From Tetramitus jugosus (Eukaryota > Protista > Heterolobosea): DNA of 64,000 bases. The stretch is from assembly GCA_937625935.1 (NCBI GenBank), contig OW569367.1:310001-374000 (forward strand), read 5' to 3'. Within the stretch, counting starts at the first letter, position 1. Each line of letters starts with the position of its first letter. Position numbers and translations under genes: made by a program. Of this stretch, positions 1,935 through 10,132 are shown piece by piece. A model generated the notes under the pieces. The model had not been told where the DNA came from. It worked only from the letters and a program-made list of their open reading frames with translations, and made no database searches.

Positions 1935-4279
1935 TTATAGAACAAGACCTGGTGAGTGGCTTCCAATATTTGCTAATTCATCTGATTGAACATTTAGATA
2001 ATTGTCACTGTGTCCCTTGACCCATGAATAAGACACAGATAAATTCTTGTCTTGGCATGTGGATAATACAAATTCCTGAAGTTCTTTGCAATAATGATCT
2101 CCATGATTTTGTTTACACACATTGTCATTGTCACAATAGATGTCCAAGTGTTGGTTCGGAGGAGCCACCAAACAAGCCACAGCCACAGAATACAGTTCAC
2201 AATAGTTCGAACTGGTGGCGTACTGAATGCGAAATGGTAGCCGATAAACCACTCTCTCGTGGTCAACAAAAACAATTCCACCACCTCCGCTTTGTTGTTC
2301 GCTCCTGAAGGCTGCATCGGTATACACTTGATCAAATGCTATATCGTCGAGATCTTCCTGAATACCGAAAATAAGATCAGATGTTGGATCAGGTACAGAG
2401 GGACGACTAATCCTCTTTCTTCTTCGATATGATTCCGGTTGCTTGTTCTTTTGGGACCAATTGAACTTTTTCAAGTGCTTCTCGAGCATTCGAACTGTAC
2501 CACTTGATATTCCTCGAACTTCTTTAAATATTTCCTTGAATGATACTCTGTTGTTGTTCTCAGGACTACTATGTGCTAGTAAAGCTCGGATCACTCTGTG
2601 GTACCAATCATTGTCTGTCTCGATATCATTATTCTGAACATGTTCCACAACTCCTAATACTTGAGACAGATTATTCGAGTGGCCAAGTAAGGTAGAAAAG
2701 AGAAAGATACTAGGAATCATCTCGTATCGTTCTTCTAATTCTGATGTTAGTGCTAAACACGTTTCAATGTGGTTTGCTATCCCCATTTTATGAATCACGG
2801 TGTAGACGAAGTACTCATCAATATGAAGTGTTTCATGACTATTGAGTTTGTCGAACCATTGCAATAATAGATTTACGTCTCCTACCATTGCTAAACACCG
2901 ACCCATTGCGTCGTAATATTGTAAATCATCATCCGATAACTTTCGACGAACCAAATAGTTGAACAGTTTCAAAATATGATCATGATAGCTCTTGGGAGAC
3001 TTTCTACTCATCTCTTGCAACACCTTTGTATACGCTGCACACGAGAGAGGATCTACATTAGAGATTGAGTATTGAACAGCTTTTTCAATCTGCGCTGCTC
3101 CCACGTACGCAAGCACAATCTGCTCCTTCTCATGTAAGGAGTACGAGAGGTGCATTCGATCGGCATCTCTCGATATCCGTTCTGCGAGATCCATATGATT
3201 GTTCTCAATGGCGATTCGAATCAATTCAGACATTAAATTCTCTGTTACCGGTCGACGCTCCTCCTTACTCACATGCTGACTATACAGTAGTTCAGCTCTA
3301 TCTTCCTTATGCTTCTTCAAGTAGTATCCAAACAGAAAACAAAACTGTTTCTCCGTAATGACAGATGAATTCCCTTCCATCTCTCGAATCATTTGTTCTT
3401 CTCGTTCCAAACCTCTCAATATCTCATTTACAATTCCATAGGACTGCTTGGACAACAAGTCGTATCGAGTGGCAAATTGCTTCACACGATTCACATGTTC
3501 TCTTCTCGTTCTCTCATCTATCCTCATTTGCTTCAAAATGTGCTGAATGGTCGTCATGAACAACTGACGATCACTATTGCGATTTCTGTGCTTGTTATTC
3601 TTCATCGTTGGCATTGAACCAAAATTTTGGTCGTCGTCTTCCTCACTCATCATTGTATTCGCATGATTTTGATGATAATACTCATGATAGTAGTACTTTG
3701 GAGAGAATAGACAATCATGCACAGCTTGCAAGCATGATATGCATCGATCAAACTGTCCATTCATTGCTTGCATCACAGCCAAGTCCAACAATAGTTTTGG
3801 CTTCTTGGTAATCAACCGACTCCACCACCACCACCAATGTTGACCTTCAACATGATGATGAGAACTTCCTTTGGTGGCTTCTTCCAGTGGCAAGTAATCG
3901 TTCAAAATGGAGTCAATCTTGTCATAGCTTCTGAGAGCTATATTCTGATTTGTTTCACACAGAACATGTCCTTGCTTGTTTCCTTCATTGCTGTGGTGAG
4001 ATGATGGATCAATGAGTTGCGAAAGTGAATGCACACCATGCATGACACAAATTTGCTTCTTGAGGTTATGAATGAGATCTATCAGTGTTTTTCAATCTGC
4101 TTCTGATTCTTGTGTTGCTGACGGGCGATGGATGCTTCATTTGAATGCGGACCACGTTTCAGAGTGTGGCTGTGAAAAGAGAGTTGTTGGAAAGATGATG
4201 GAAGAAGAAGATACTTTGGTGCTGTTGAGAGAGTGATGAGTGATCGTGGGGAACGCAGTAAGGAATGAATTGGCCACAT
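1935..4279 (-). CDS. PPR-like helical repeat protein fused to C-terminal RNase H1 domain; probable mitochondrial presequence in an upstream frame
   Basis: Main ORF 1935-4043 has ~8 degenerate ~35-aa repeats, then YTDAA..NYCEL..YCDN..WVKGHS..N..SDELA. Upstream ORF from ATG 4279 (MWPIHSLLRSPRSLITLS..) joins it through a 1-nt shift at the T5 run 4088-4092 or a 44-nt intron. Confidence 0.75.
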
Positions 4280-4439
4280 GGCAATAGTGGTGTTGTTTGA
4301 GGTTGTGGTGCGAGTATTGATGATCTTCAACCAGATTTTGTTTTGTTGAAGGTGCAATCGAAAAATACAACGAGATTACAATTTCAACAAAAGTTCATAC
4401 CCCGTCTTCAGTCTTCAGTAGTTGTTGTAGTATCACAAG

Positions 4440-4972: not shown

Positions 4973-5127
4973 TGTTGATCGTGTTTCTCTTGTCCTTGCT
5001 TGTCCTTTTCTGAACCCAAATTCATCCGACCAGGAACTTGGCCCTTGGTACTTGGAACATTCTTACAAAAAAAAGCTCAGAAAACTGCAAAAAAAAAGCA
5101 ACAACAAACATCATCAAGAAAGAGCAG

Positions 5128-6459
5128 ATGGGATCCAAACATAGCAAAAAAGCTGTAAAATATGATATTGAACAATTCAGCGCCAGTCCAAACAACAACA
5201 ACAACAGCAGTCCAGACAATGGTTCCAAAGCAGTTGATGTCATTTCACAAGACCAAACAACAAAACAAGAGGAACCACTGGAACCAGAAGAGTTGTTGAC
5301 ACAGAACATTTTTGAGTTGTTGTCATGTGATTTGCAAATGTACATTTTAACATTCTTGTGCATGCGAGACCTGTATCATATATCATTGAGTTGTCAACAT
5401 GGTGCATACTTGGTGTTGAGTCCAGAAGCTGACGGGTACGTGTGGAAGTTGATGGCCAGTCATCTCGGATTCAACAATGAAGAAACTATTCGAGCACTCA
5501 TGCAAGAATTGGAAGAACGAGAGAATATCAAGGAAGATGATCAACCAAAGAACAAGAGCAAGAAGAAGAATAAGATGTGGAAGCTATTTCATAGGATGAC
5601 GTTGGATGATCACTCATCGACAAGCAAGAGTATAACAAGTAGTGAGAATGGCGGTGATGGTGGTGAGAAGGCTATTGAAGTCACAGAAGCATTAGAGAAG
5701 CAAGACCAGGACAATGGAGAAGAAGGAGTCGTCTCTCCTACATTGTCTGACGACAACGAGAAAAACCACTCAGCAGATGAAAATCTAACTGGCGAAGACT
5801 TGGCGACAAACGAAGGAATTGTGGTTGATTATCCACCAAACATGTGGAGATCGTTGGTGCATTCAAACTTGATGAAATGGGCTCCTGAAACAAGGACATC
5901 TGACACTGACATCAAGATGCACAACAATAACAAGACAATTTCATGTGAGAGACAAAGCAAGTGGGACACGATTCGAACCAACAGAAAACTTGAAATGGGA
6001 ATGGTTCATGGTTGGGAGTACGTTCTGGATGATCATGACAATGGTGGCTACAATTCCTATCGAGTGTTTGTTGGTATTGAGAAAAGTACGTACGCATTTA
6101 CTGAAGTGGGATTCGACAAGATTATTGGCTACAACAGTGAAGGTGTCAGTTATAATGTTGGTGAACACACTGTTCACAGAGACAATTCACATCAGCTCAA
6201 TGACAGATCTGTTCTGCATGAGAAGCATTTTGTATTCAGCACGGGTGACACAATTGGAATCAAACTCGATTTGAAGAATTTGAGCAGTTCAAAGAAAGCT
6301 TCCATGTATCTCTTCAAGAACAACAAGTATTTCATGACGATATCAGACATTGCCACGAAAGGCATCGTGTATTATCCTGCCATATCAGTCATTGGCCACC
6401 AAAAGGTATCCATTCGAATGAAGCATCCATCCATGCTTGACATCAATAACAGTGTTTAG
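5128..6459 (+). CDS. F-box + SPRY/B30.2 protein, copy 1, predicted N-myristoylated
   Basis: First ATG gives MGSKHSKK; F-box (IFELLSCDLQMYILTFLCMRDLYHISLSCQ); SPRY (WEYVLD..VFVGI..FSTGDTIGIKLDL..LFKNN..YYPAIS). Confidence 0.85.
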   Translation: MGSKHSKKAVKYDIEQFSASPNNNNNSSPDNGSKAVDVISQDQTTKQEEPLEPEELLTQNIFELLSCDLQMYILTFLCMRDLYHISLSCQHGAYLVLSPEADGYVWKLMASHLGFNNEETIRALMQELEERENIKEDDQPKNKSKKKNKMWKLFHRMTLDDHSSTSKSITSSENGGDGGEKAIEVTEALEKQDQDNGEEGVVSPTLSDDNEKNHSADENLTGEDLATNEGIVVDYPPNMWRSLVHSNLMKWAPETRTSDTDIKMHNNNKTISCERQSKWDTIRTNRKLEMGMVHGWEYVLDDHDNGGYNSYRVFVGIEKSTYAFTEVGFDKIIGYNSEGVSYNVGEHTVHRDNSHQLNDRSVLHEKHFVFSTGDTIGIKLDLKNLSSSKKASMYLFKNNKYFMTISDIATKGIVYYPAISVIGHQKVSIRMKHPSMLDINNSV

Positions 6460-7782: not shown

Positions 7783-8334
7783 TTAATTAGTGGCCGTTAG
7801 ATTTTGCTGAATCTTGCTCAACTTAATACCTCGGAAGTAAGTGGAAATACCCTTTTTCGTGATGTGATCAATGGCAAGTTTCATCATTGTTTGGTGCTCG
7901 CTCGATATTCCAATCGAGGATGCAAAATCAATCTCGATATACCTCCTGTCTATTCCACTTATCAGCAATAGACACATTACAATCACTCCGGTTCTATCCT
8001 TTCCTGATGCACAATGGATCAACACAGGATATTGTACACTTTCAGCTTCGAATAACTTGATGACAGATAGTATCCACTTGTATGTCTCCTTTTCTTGAAC
8101 ATCATACGACTCTAGATCTCTTTCTTTTGCCATTTGAAAGAAAGCAGGACGATGTTCCAATGGTTCATTATGGAATTGTGTTTCATTGTCCTGTTGTTTC
8201 CTCAGGTTAAGTATTGTTCGAGGGTACCAAATATCCTTTATAGTGAGATAATCTATACTTCCTCCACGGTAAATTCTTTTGGCTGGAAACTGTGGCACAT
8301 TCACAGAGACATCTCTCAAATTCTTACACTGCAT
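7783..8334 (-). CDS. Protein tyrosine/serine phosphatase, IphP (Y_phosphatase3) family
   Basis: NLRD..IYRGG..TILNLR and CX5R motif PVLIHCASGKDRTG. Confidence 0.85.
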   Translation of the reverse strand: MQCKNLRDVSVNVPQFPAKRIYRGGSIDYLTIKDIWYPRTILNLRKQQDNETQFHNEPLEHRPAFFQMAKERDLESYDVQEKETYKWILSVIKLFEAESVQYPVLIHCASGKDRTGVIVMCLLLISGIDRRYIEIDFASSIGISSEHQTMMKLAIDHITKKGISTYFRGIKLSKIQQNLTATN

Positions 8335-8437: not shown

Positions 8438-10132
8438 TTATTGACAGAGAATATCAATGTCGGTGAATGACTGGTTTATACTTGCTTTCAGTTTCTCTTT
8501 CATGATAAAGGGACTTTGCCTCTCGTCGCTCAGTACTGTGACACAATCAACTTCCAGGTTCATCCTGATAACACCCTCACATGTCTGTTTGTCCACATTC
8601 CACACACGAATCGTCCGATCTGGCGAAGCACTGTAGATAATAGAGCTGTTTTTCTGGGAGACTGACAAATAGTTGACACCCTTTTTATGTCCATAGAGTT
8701 TCACAAACGGTTGCATCATCCGAACATCCCAACCAACAATCAGTGAATCCTGGCCACACGACCAAACTTCATGATACTTTCGATTAGTGACAAAGTTAAC
8801 TGATCCGTTGTGTCCCTTACGAACCAGGGATGGAAGATTAATCGTATTGCTGGAGTATGAAAGAGTTCGGGTATCATACAAACCGACGTCTCCATGAAAA
8901 CCTGTTACAATCAGTGCTGAATGTGTTCGATTGTAGCACATGGAATTAATAAGAAGATTGAATTTGGCATCATTGTCTCGATCGACATCATCAGAGAGTC
9001 TGTGTAGATCCCACATTCGCACACATGTGTCAAATGATCCACTATATGCAACATCTCGATCGGTATCTGCAACAATAGAAGTTATCCAGGAGGTGTGACC
9101 GGACAACTTGACCAGTGGTTCGAATCGATCGTCGATGATTGATTCTTCATCATCATCAACACTACTGTCAATGATCTCCTCATCTCTTTTCACTCGAAGG
9201 AAACCAACGTGTTCATCATGTGAGGCAGTTGCCAAAATGTTATACTTTGGAAAAGCAGCAATCTGCTGTATAGTGCTCGTGTGAAACTGAGAACATCGAC
9301 CTCGAATCTTACCCATCAAGGGGTCCCATTGAATCACTGTGGAATCGTGTCCTGCAGAGTACAAATAACCATTCATATTCTCAAATGTCTTAATGGACCT
9401 TGTGTGGCCCTTGAATCCGTGATATGATTCATTCTCATACGTCGGATCAACCGAATTGCCCTTCATCTTTACGTTGTGCACTGATTTGACGACAATAGGT
9501 TTCACTCCCTTCATAAAATCATAAGTACCTTCCTCCTTCTTTCTGCCTTTTCCACTACTCGACTTGTTATCATTTCTATTCTTCTTATTCTTGCCTCGAC
9601 TCGCTTTACTCTTCTTTTCGGCTGCTCTCTCAACATGTTGTTTCTGTTTACCACCACCATGCTTCACGTGCTTATTCTTGTGATGATGGTAGCTACTTTT
9701 CTTTTGCTTTGCGTTTTCATCGTAATCTCCCCAGTACTTGTTCCAAACGTCCTCCTCTTCTTCTTTTTCTTCTTCTTCGACAGTATCGGCAGCAATCTCT
9801 TCCGTTTCACTACCACCATCTTCATTTTCTTCTTCTTCACTGTCCCAATCGTTCTTCTTCTTTTTCTTCGTTTGTGCAAAAGCTTCAGGTACAGAATCAC
9901 CTCTAACATCATTCTCATCATTGTCATTTGACAATTTCCATCGTATCAATCGACAAGGACCATCTGTTCTCTTGTAGAGACCGATCACCAAGTTTTCATG
10001 TGAGTCTGTCGTGGGATTGGCTTGTTTTTCTTCCAATGTGTTTCCTGTGAAAAGAGATGGAGTCGTGGCTTGACTGGCTTGAGCAAAGAAACTGGCATCT
10101 AGTGGCCTCTGAGTCAGTGGATATGGTTTCAT
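8438..10132 (-). CDS. WD40-repeat protein with charged N-terminal region
   Basis: Multiple GH..S.S.D..V..WD repeats. Confidence 0.85.
   Translation of the reverse strand: MKPYPLTQRPLDASFFAQASQATTPSLFTGNTLEEKQANPTTDSHENLVIGLYKRTDGPCRLIRWKLSNDNDENDVRGDSVPEAFAQTKKKKKNDWDSEEEENEDGGSETEEIAADTVEEEEKEEEEDVWNKYWGDYDENAKQKKSSYHHHKNKHVKHGGGKQKQHVERAAEKKSKASRGKNKKNRNDNKSSSGKGRKKEEGTYDFMKGVKPIVVKSVHNVKMKGNSVDPTYENESYHGFKGHTRSIKTFENMNGYLYSAGHDSTVIQWDPLMGKIRGRCSQFHTSTIQQIAAFPKYNILATASHDEHVGFLRVKRDEEIIDSSVDDDEESIIDDRFEPLVKLSGHTSWITSIVADTDRDVAYSGSFDTCVRMWDLHRLSDDVDRDNDAKFNLLINSMCYNRTHSALIVTGFHGDVGLYDTRTLSYSSNTINLPSLVRKGHNGSVNFVTNRKYHEVWSCGQDSLIVGWDVRMMQPFVKLYGHKKGVNYLSVSQKNSSIIYSASPDRTIRVWNVDKQTCEGVIRMNLEVDCVTVLSDERQSPFIMKEKLKASINQSFTDIDILCQ

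Follow-up and report, generated by a model that had tools for sequence, protein, structure and literature searches.

The heterolobosean Tetramitus jugosus carries, in a 64,000-nucleotide stretch of contig OW569367.1 (the window), a gene in which a PPR array is followed on the same chain by an RNase HI domain of non-LTR retrotransposon type. Very probably the gene descends from a duplicated protist P-class PPR gene in which the C-terminal cap gave way to the RNase H domain of a non-LTR retrotransposon of EN-RT-RH type. Proteins that combine a PPR array with a catalytic domain are of a known kind, and a member with a selected retrotransposon-type RNase H appears to be undescribed.

The gene lies on the minus strand at positions 1935-4279 of the window, flanked by a BTB-BACK-PHR gene that converges on it and by a SPRY-like gene, and is present in a single copy at the DNA level in the T. 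jugosus genome (26,350,207 bases in 56 contigs searched). The genome of T. jugosus CCAP 1588/3C was reported as 26.3 Mb, in 55 scaffolds plus the mitochondrion, from two HiFi runs (PMC11106597). The surroundings of the gene look ordinary, with the BTB-BACK-PHR gene at 3-1820, a weak SPRY match at 5038-6459, a tyrosine-phosphatase-like gene at 7783-8334 and a WD40 gene at 8438-10132. Elsewhere in the assembly, contigs C54 and C56 (G000) give cox1 matches at identical coordinates, and the assembly seems to contain two copies of the mitochondrial genome. The main open reading frame (ORF) of the fusion gene, 1935..4043 (-), encodes 702 amino acids; residue numbers (aa 1-702) are counted from the ATG at 4043. 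All peptides quoted in a first-pass annotation of this DNA occur in that ORF, and the two folds in its outline of about eight tandem PPR-like repeats, a basic linker and an RNase HI domain were confirmed by AlphaFold and by fold searches. The parts of the gene are as follows.

4139..4279, minus strand: presequence-like leader, first 47 codons; rich in S, L and R, no D or E, amphipathic at residues 4-14; assigned on composition only
4088..4092, minus strand: homopolymer run, one base shorter in the window haplotype than in X3, X4 and X10; the frameshift that parts leader from body
3354..4087, minus strand: N-terminal region; low-complexity stretches of His, Trp and Asp followed by a helical part; includes the downstream ATG 4043
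2520..3353, minus strand: PPR array of 7.5-8 degenerate P-type repeats, aa 231-508
3353, 3242, 3137, 3041, 2924, 2816, 2708 and 2612, minus strand: starts of the PPR repeats
2334..2519, minus strand: linker, with a basic RRRKR patch from 2426; disordered in the model
1956..2333, minus strand: RNase HI domain of non-LTR retrotransposon type, without a basic protrusion
2318 (D576), 2198 (E616), 2132 (D638), 2012 (H678) and 1982 (D688), minus strand: starts of the catalytic codons
1935..1955, minus strand: tail of six residues, then the stop codon; lacks the C-terminal region of the retroelement

No Pfam PPR family matches the fusion protein directly. A profile built from PPR-family relatives alone, nine in number (P0004, P0008, P0009 and the own-genome paralogues L015-L019 and L021), gives the fusion protein 122 bits over aa 129-493, while none of 500 shuffles exceeds 10.8 bits, and seven of the nine relatives exceed a Pfam PPR cut-off. 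The family match is still present in the N-terminal helical part, from about aa 129. AlphaFold, given the relatives as its alignment, models 7.5-8 helix pairs at a spacing of 32-39 aa, with a pLDDT of about 90 across the first seven pairs; in the linker (aa 527-555) the pLDDT falls under 50. In structural searches the array came closest to designed PPR-RNA complexes and to maize PPR10 (Z 15.8, rmsd 8.3, 291 aligned); mitoribosomal PPR proteins are numerous among its matches. The PPR/alpha-solenoid fold read earlier from the sequence is thus borne out by the helix pairs and by the structural neighbours.

The code pairs at positions 5/35 are, in repeat order, CT, SS, ES, TD, DD, YS, SD and H?, with T, S or D always at position 35. 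Under the plant PPR code, two of the seven complete pairs are clearly canonical, namely TD and SD, both for G; SS is near-canonical. Since only TD and SD are clearly canonical, base-specific reading by the array, as judged from these pairs, is doubtful.

The genome holds at least six stand-alone PPR paralogues with a common C-terminal helical cap (L015-L019, L021), and members of this family also occur in other protist contigs (P0004, P0008, P0009). The latter three proteins were returned by the full HMMER search as matches to aa 216-510. They were rejected as orthologues: their best matches in the T. jugosus genome are other paralogues, and the PPR family tree leaves these relations unsettled. 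The fused copy sits on a long branch (1.71), and its linker and RNase H occupy the place of the relatives' further helices and conserved cap. At about 3820-3850 of the window, a His-rich stretch is followed by five Trp codons in a row, a run that has no counterpart in the paralogues.

The catalytic domain matches Pfam RNase_H (PF00075) at aa 573-694 with an E-value of 5e-10, above the cut-off. Its model has a pLDDT of 92.5 and matches E. coli RNase HI with an E-value of 1e-9 and a TM score of 0.69; short RNases HI of archaeal type (4e19, 3u3g, 3aly) are among its nearest structural neighbours. D576, E616, D638, H678 and D688 occupy invariant or nearly invariant alignment columns, and W674 and N684 are kept as well. 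The claim of an intact D-E-D-D set with its His loop therefore holds for all five D-E-D-H-D residues, which have survived a branch of 0.88 changes per site. A hydroxyl residue, S611, stands at the position of E. coli T43, and C652 at that of E. coli N100. Two residues and this Asn, retained in five of six retroelement-type relatives, have been lost. In RNases HI the T43 and N100 positions and the segment of the lost residues contact the DNA strand. Neither Pfam nor the fold search found an NYN, SMR, DYW or methyltransferase C-terminal domain, and RT, EN and the Cauli_VI hybrid-binding domain are all absent from the fusion protein by Pfam.

The sequences nearest to the domain are RNase H domains of retroelements, at 30-41% identity. 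In HMMER searches these gave E-values of 1.9e-20 to 1.7e-11, and bacterial-type matches 1e-6 or weaker. A577, S612 and N639 are common to all six retroelement-type rows of the alignment, where nearly all other rows have G, N and S. In the tree, which includes no animal or fungal RNase H1, the domain branches as the sister group of the retroelement clade with a support of 94/82, which is below the tool's threshold for strong support. A host RNase H1 was rejected as donor, as a clade of the domain with both host genes (L005, L006) has a p-AU of 0.0004. Positions nested inside the retroelement clade were not rejected (p-AU 0.43 and 0.10), and the tree tests neither show nor reject the resident element as the direct donor. 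The phylogeny that had been proposed to separate a cellular from a retroelement origin thus falls on the retroelement side. The first-pass annotation had set the repeats against the hybrid-binding domain usual in RNase H1; the enzyme is not a cellular RNase H1 in which that domain was exchanged but groups with the RNase H of non-LTR retrotransposons, and two ordinary RNase H1 genes remain in the genome. Host RNase H1 L005 has a Cauli_VI domain. L006 (L006:1450-2940, on G000:C30) has none, and shows a long low-complexity N-terminus and Asn/Thr-rich inserts in its catalytic domain; from its sequence it is a candidate mitochondrial RNase H1 and could serve that organelle.

Among the retroelement relatives, P0005 and P0007 are complete EN-RT-RH proteins, and P0002, P0003 and P0006 run on into the same downstream sequence. 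The gene upstream of P0002 (L033:2-895) resembles that of a short-chain dehydrogenase, making P0002 a truncated element next to a host gene. The T. jugosus genome has its own EN-RT-RH family, with one full-length open copy on C1 (L035, G000:C1:200855-204826) and several 5'-truncated copies that share its 3' end. The loci of the family are L035, L036-L039 and L050, and their RNase H resembles short bacterial-type enzymes with a His loop. Altogether 74 RVT_1 matches were found in the genome, many in long open frames, of which only the EN-RT-RH family of L035 has an RNase_H match; among the matches listed, none lies on mitochondrial contigs. The direction of transfer, from element to host, was inferred from the diversity of the element clade and the confinement of the fusion to one species. 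The fused domain is about 65% diverged from that of the resident retroelement, yet it is free of stops and its active site is intact.

The fusion was also recovered from an independent metagenome contig (L010), which encodes aa 171-702 in one ORF with PPR and RNase H together. This comparison is one of alleles or strains at about 97% identity and not of species; over all compared codons it gave 25 synonymous and 19 non-synonymous changes (pN/pS 0.20, p 2e-7). The PPR array accounts for 10 changes of each kind (pN/pS 0.26, p 0.003), and the RNase H core for eight synonymous and no non-synonymous changes (p 3e-6). Judged from these codon counts, the fusion is kept by purifying selection.

Upstream of the main ORF, an ATG at 4279 opens a frame of 65 codons, whose first 47 residues include no D or E and have an amphipathic start. 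Its Ser/Leu/Arg-rich, acid-free composition agrees, by composition only, with the presequence-like leader described earlier. In the window the leader frame differs from the body frame. The T5 run at 4088-4092 is T6 in three sequencing runs: X3 (another sample of the same organism), X4 (from groundwater, taken for DNA) and X10 (a soil metatranscriptome). The extra T places leader and body in a single frame of 781 codons. The earlier proposal of a leader joined to the body thus stands for these three runs and fails for the assembled haplotype, which is frameshifted. An intron joining the two parts was considered, as GT/GC-AG candidates exist, but no splice joint between leader and body was seen in any of the runs compared, and three of them differ by the 1-nt indel. 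RNA editing is an unlikely origin of the extra base, since X4, taken for DNA, has it too.

In X1, probably the source HiFi run, the short T run is supported at a depth of 27.5. Second alleles occur in this run at window positions 2823-2876, 4161-4298 and 4421, at about one quarter of the depth (8.6-9.7 of 33-35), pointing to a polyploid organism or a mixed culture. With second alleles at that depth, and with contigs that drop rare variants, an intact allele within the sequenced culture is possible. The major haplotype of this culture has a frameshifted leader, so the imported form may be dispensable. X3 has zero cover in the intergenic bin 4319-4415 and the X10 contigs cover most of the gene, a pattern that fits transcription of the gene. 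Database searches and folding were done on the pieces separately rather than on the joined leader-body protein. Judged from its leader, the fusion protein is probably mitochondrial.

We tentatively favour a mitochondrial RNase H that its PPR array tethers to particular transcripts and that cuts the RNA of nearby R-loops or primers, although we would put its chances at slightly short of even; its location, activity, substrate and choice of site are all inferred. The intact allele would yield a protein of 781 aa that is imported into mitochondria, where the array would bind the single-stranded part of particular transcripts. The flexible linker would then place the RNase H, a two-metal enzyme, on a neighbouring RNA:DNA hybrid (R-loop or primer), whose RNA strand would be cut. 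This reading is favoured because the order of parts is that of RNase H1 (PMC9181182), and because RNases HI without a basic protrusion are weak unless another domain aids binding (PMC1950709); the array may stand in for both the missing hybrid-binding domain and the missing protrusion. Against it count the mostly non-canonical code pairs, the loss of two residues and of the Asn at the N100 position, the presence of L006 as a possible mitochondrial RNase H1 and the frameshifted leader of the major haplotype. It is somewhat unlikely that a stronger version holds, in which the fusion is a naturally evolved RNase H guided by sequence, with a PPR array that reads a specific mitochondrial RNA and so directs the domesticated retrotransposon nuclease to its cut site.

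It is rather unlikely, too, that the protein is a mitochondrial RNA-processing endonuclease comparable to PRORP or PPR-SMR, in which the PPR array binds a transcript and an RNase H that checks the DNA strand less strictly cleaves RNA that is structured or double-stranded. The loss of the conserved Asn and of two residues in the DNA-strand-contacting segment would suit such an enzyme, as would the missing basic protrusion and the resemblance to 4e19, 3u3g and 3aly. PPR proteins normally act on transcripts, and two host RNase H1 genes already handle hybrids. The RNase HI of Sulfolobus tokodaii does cut dsRNA, but it is the sole reported case (PMC9719913), and the fusion still has the His loop of enzymes that cut hybrids and, in S611, the hydroxyl at the T43 position. 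Catalysis would be irrelevant if the domain were a duplex-binding or scaffold module, for instance in mitoribosome assembly. The many mitoribosomal proteins among the array matches and the degenerate PPR code are in keeping with this, but the retention of five catalytic residues with W674 and N684 at only 30-41% identity to relatives, and an RNase H core without amino-acid change between alleles, make it improbable.

A nuclear or cytosolic role has a similarly small probability. A protein initiated at ATG 4043 or further downstream, with RRRKR as its nuclear signal, would destroy RNA:cDNA intermediates of retroelements; the domain itself most likely comes from a LINE, dozens of RT-bearing loci are nuclear with none listed on mitochondrial contigs, and RNase H1 is known to be dually targeted through the use of two start codons (PMC9181182). 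The frameshifted haplotype also keeps an intact 702-aa ORF with an unchanged RNase H core, but a recent frameshift accounts equally for a clean downstream ORF, and the intact alleles have an in-frame presequence-like leader, as do several paralogues of the family. That chance, or misassembly, put a retroelement fragment in frame downstream of a PPR gene could be argued from the single species and the frameshifted reference haplotype, but this is very improbable and largely refuted by the L010 ORF and the strong synonymous excess, with the same fusion present in independent metagenome and metatranscriptome assemblies and no stop or active-site damage after some 65% divergence from the resident retroelement.

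Outside the species, the full HMMER search found the relatives of each domain only apart, never PPR and RNase H in one protein. Word-based homologue searches gave nothing useful, the metagenome scan gave the same-species contig only, and the clusters retrieved by atlas searches were all generic ones for PPR or for RNase H. The architecture search proposed at the outset thus found the fusion in no other species among the protein collections searched. The absence of an orthologue outside T. jugosus is provisional, as word-based searches are weak and the direct scan covered collections other than eukaryote genomes. Full-text literature searches found no description of a PPR-RNase H fusion, and three recent PPR reviews leave RNase H unmentioned. 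Automatic plant annotations include PPR-plus-RNase-H-like models beside LINEs. A 2026 review lists SMR, PRORP and TGM as the P-class subgroups with C-terminal domains (PMC12787238), and according to a 2023 review a good PPR-endonuclease combination is still wanted (PMC11094755).

The natural PPR-nuclease fusions named in reviews are PRORP and PPR-SMR. If active, the T. jugosus protein would add a third nuclease fold, whose usual substrates are RNA:DNA hybrids. It also shows clearly how a host gene, apparently in the service of an organelle, has domesticated the RNase H of a LINE of which a relative persists in the genome. Should sequence guidance prove true, the protein would found a new natural class of PPR endonucleases and could be developed into programmable enzymes that cut hybrids or RNA. 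The weight of the case is limited by the one-species range so far, the degenerate code and the frameshifted allele in the reference culture.

Among known systems, the stand-alone protist PPR family (L015-L019, L021; P0004, P0008, P0009) has repeats collinear with the fusion over aa 230-505, with a profile match from aa 129, but continues into further helices and a conserved cap and is without RNase H. PRORP, like the fusion, places a metal-dependent nuclease domain behind an organellar-type PPR array in one chain. Its nuclease is of the NYN/PIN fold and is joined by a zinc-binding connector (PMC9181182), where the fusion has RNase HI and a linker that is disordered; PRORP has an ancient origin and a wide distribution, whereas the fusion was found in one species. 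PPR-SMR proteins such as SOT1 and PPR53 share the P-class array and a C-terminal domain linked to endonuclease activity (PMC11094755). Their catalytic fold is different, and SMR cuts RNA, whereas RNase HI normally requires an RNA:DNA hybrid.

Eukaryotic RNase H1 has the same order of leader, nucleic-acid-binding module, flexible linker and RNase HI with D-E-D-H-D, the disordered linker of the fusion corresponding to the connection domain (PMC9181182). Unlike RNase H1, the fusion has a PPR array in place of Cauli_VI and no basic protrusion, and its catalytic domain stands apart from those of L005 and L006. The EN-RT-RH elements P0005 and P0007/L035 resemble Proto1 (PMC4640811) in layout. The fusion differs from these elements in having no EN, RT or C-terminal cysteine region, in its single copy, in the host PPR array fused to it and in the loss of two residues and the Asn; with their RNase H it shares 30-41% identity, the diagnostic residues and a sister or nested position in the tree.
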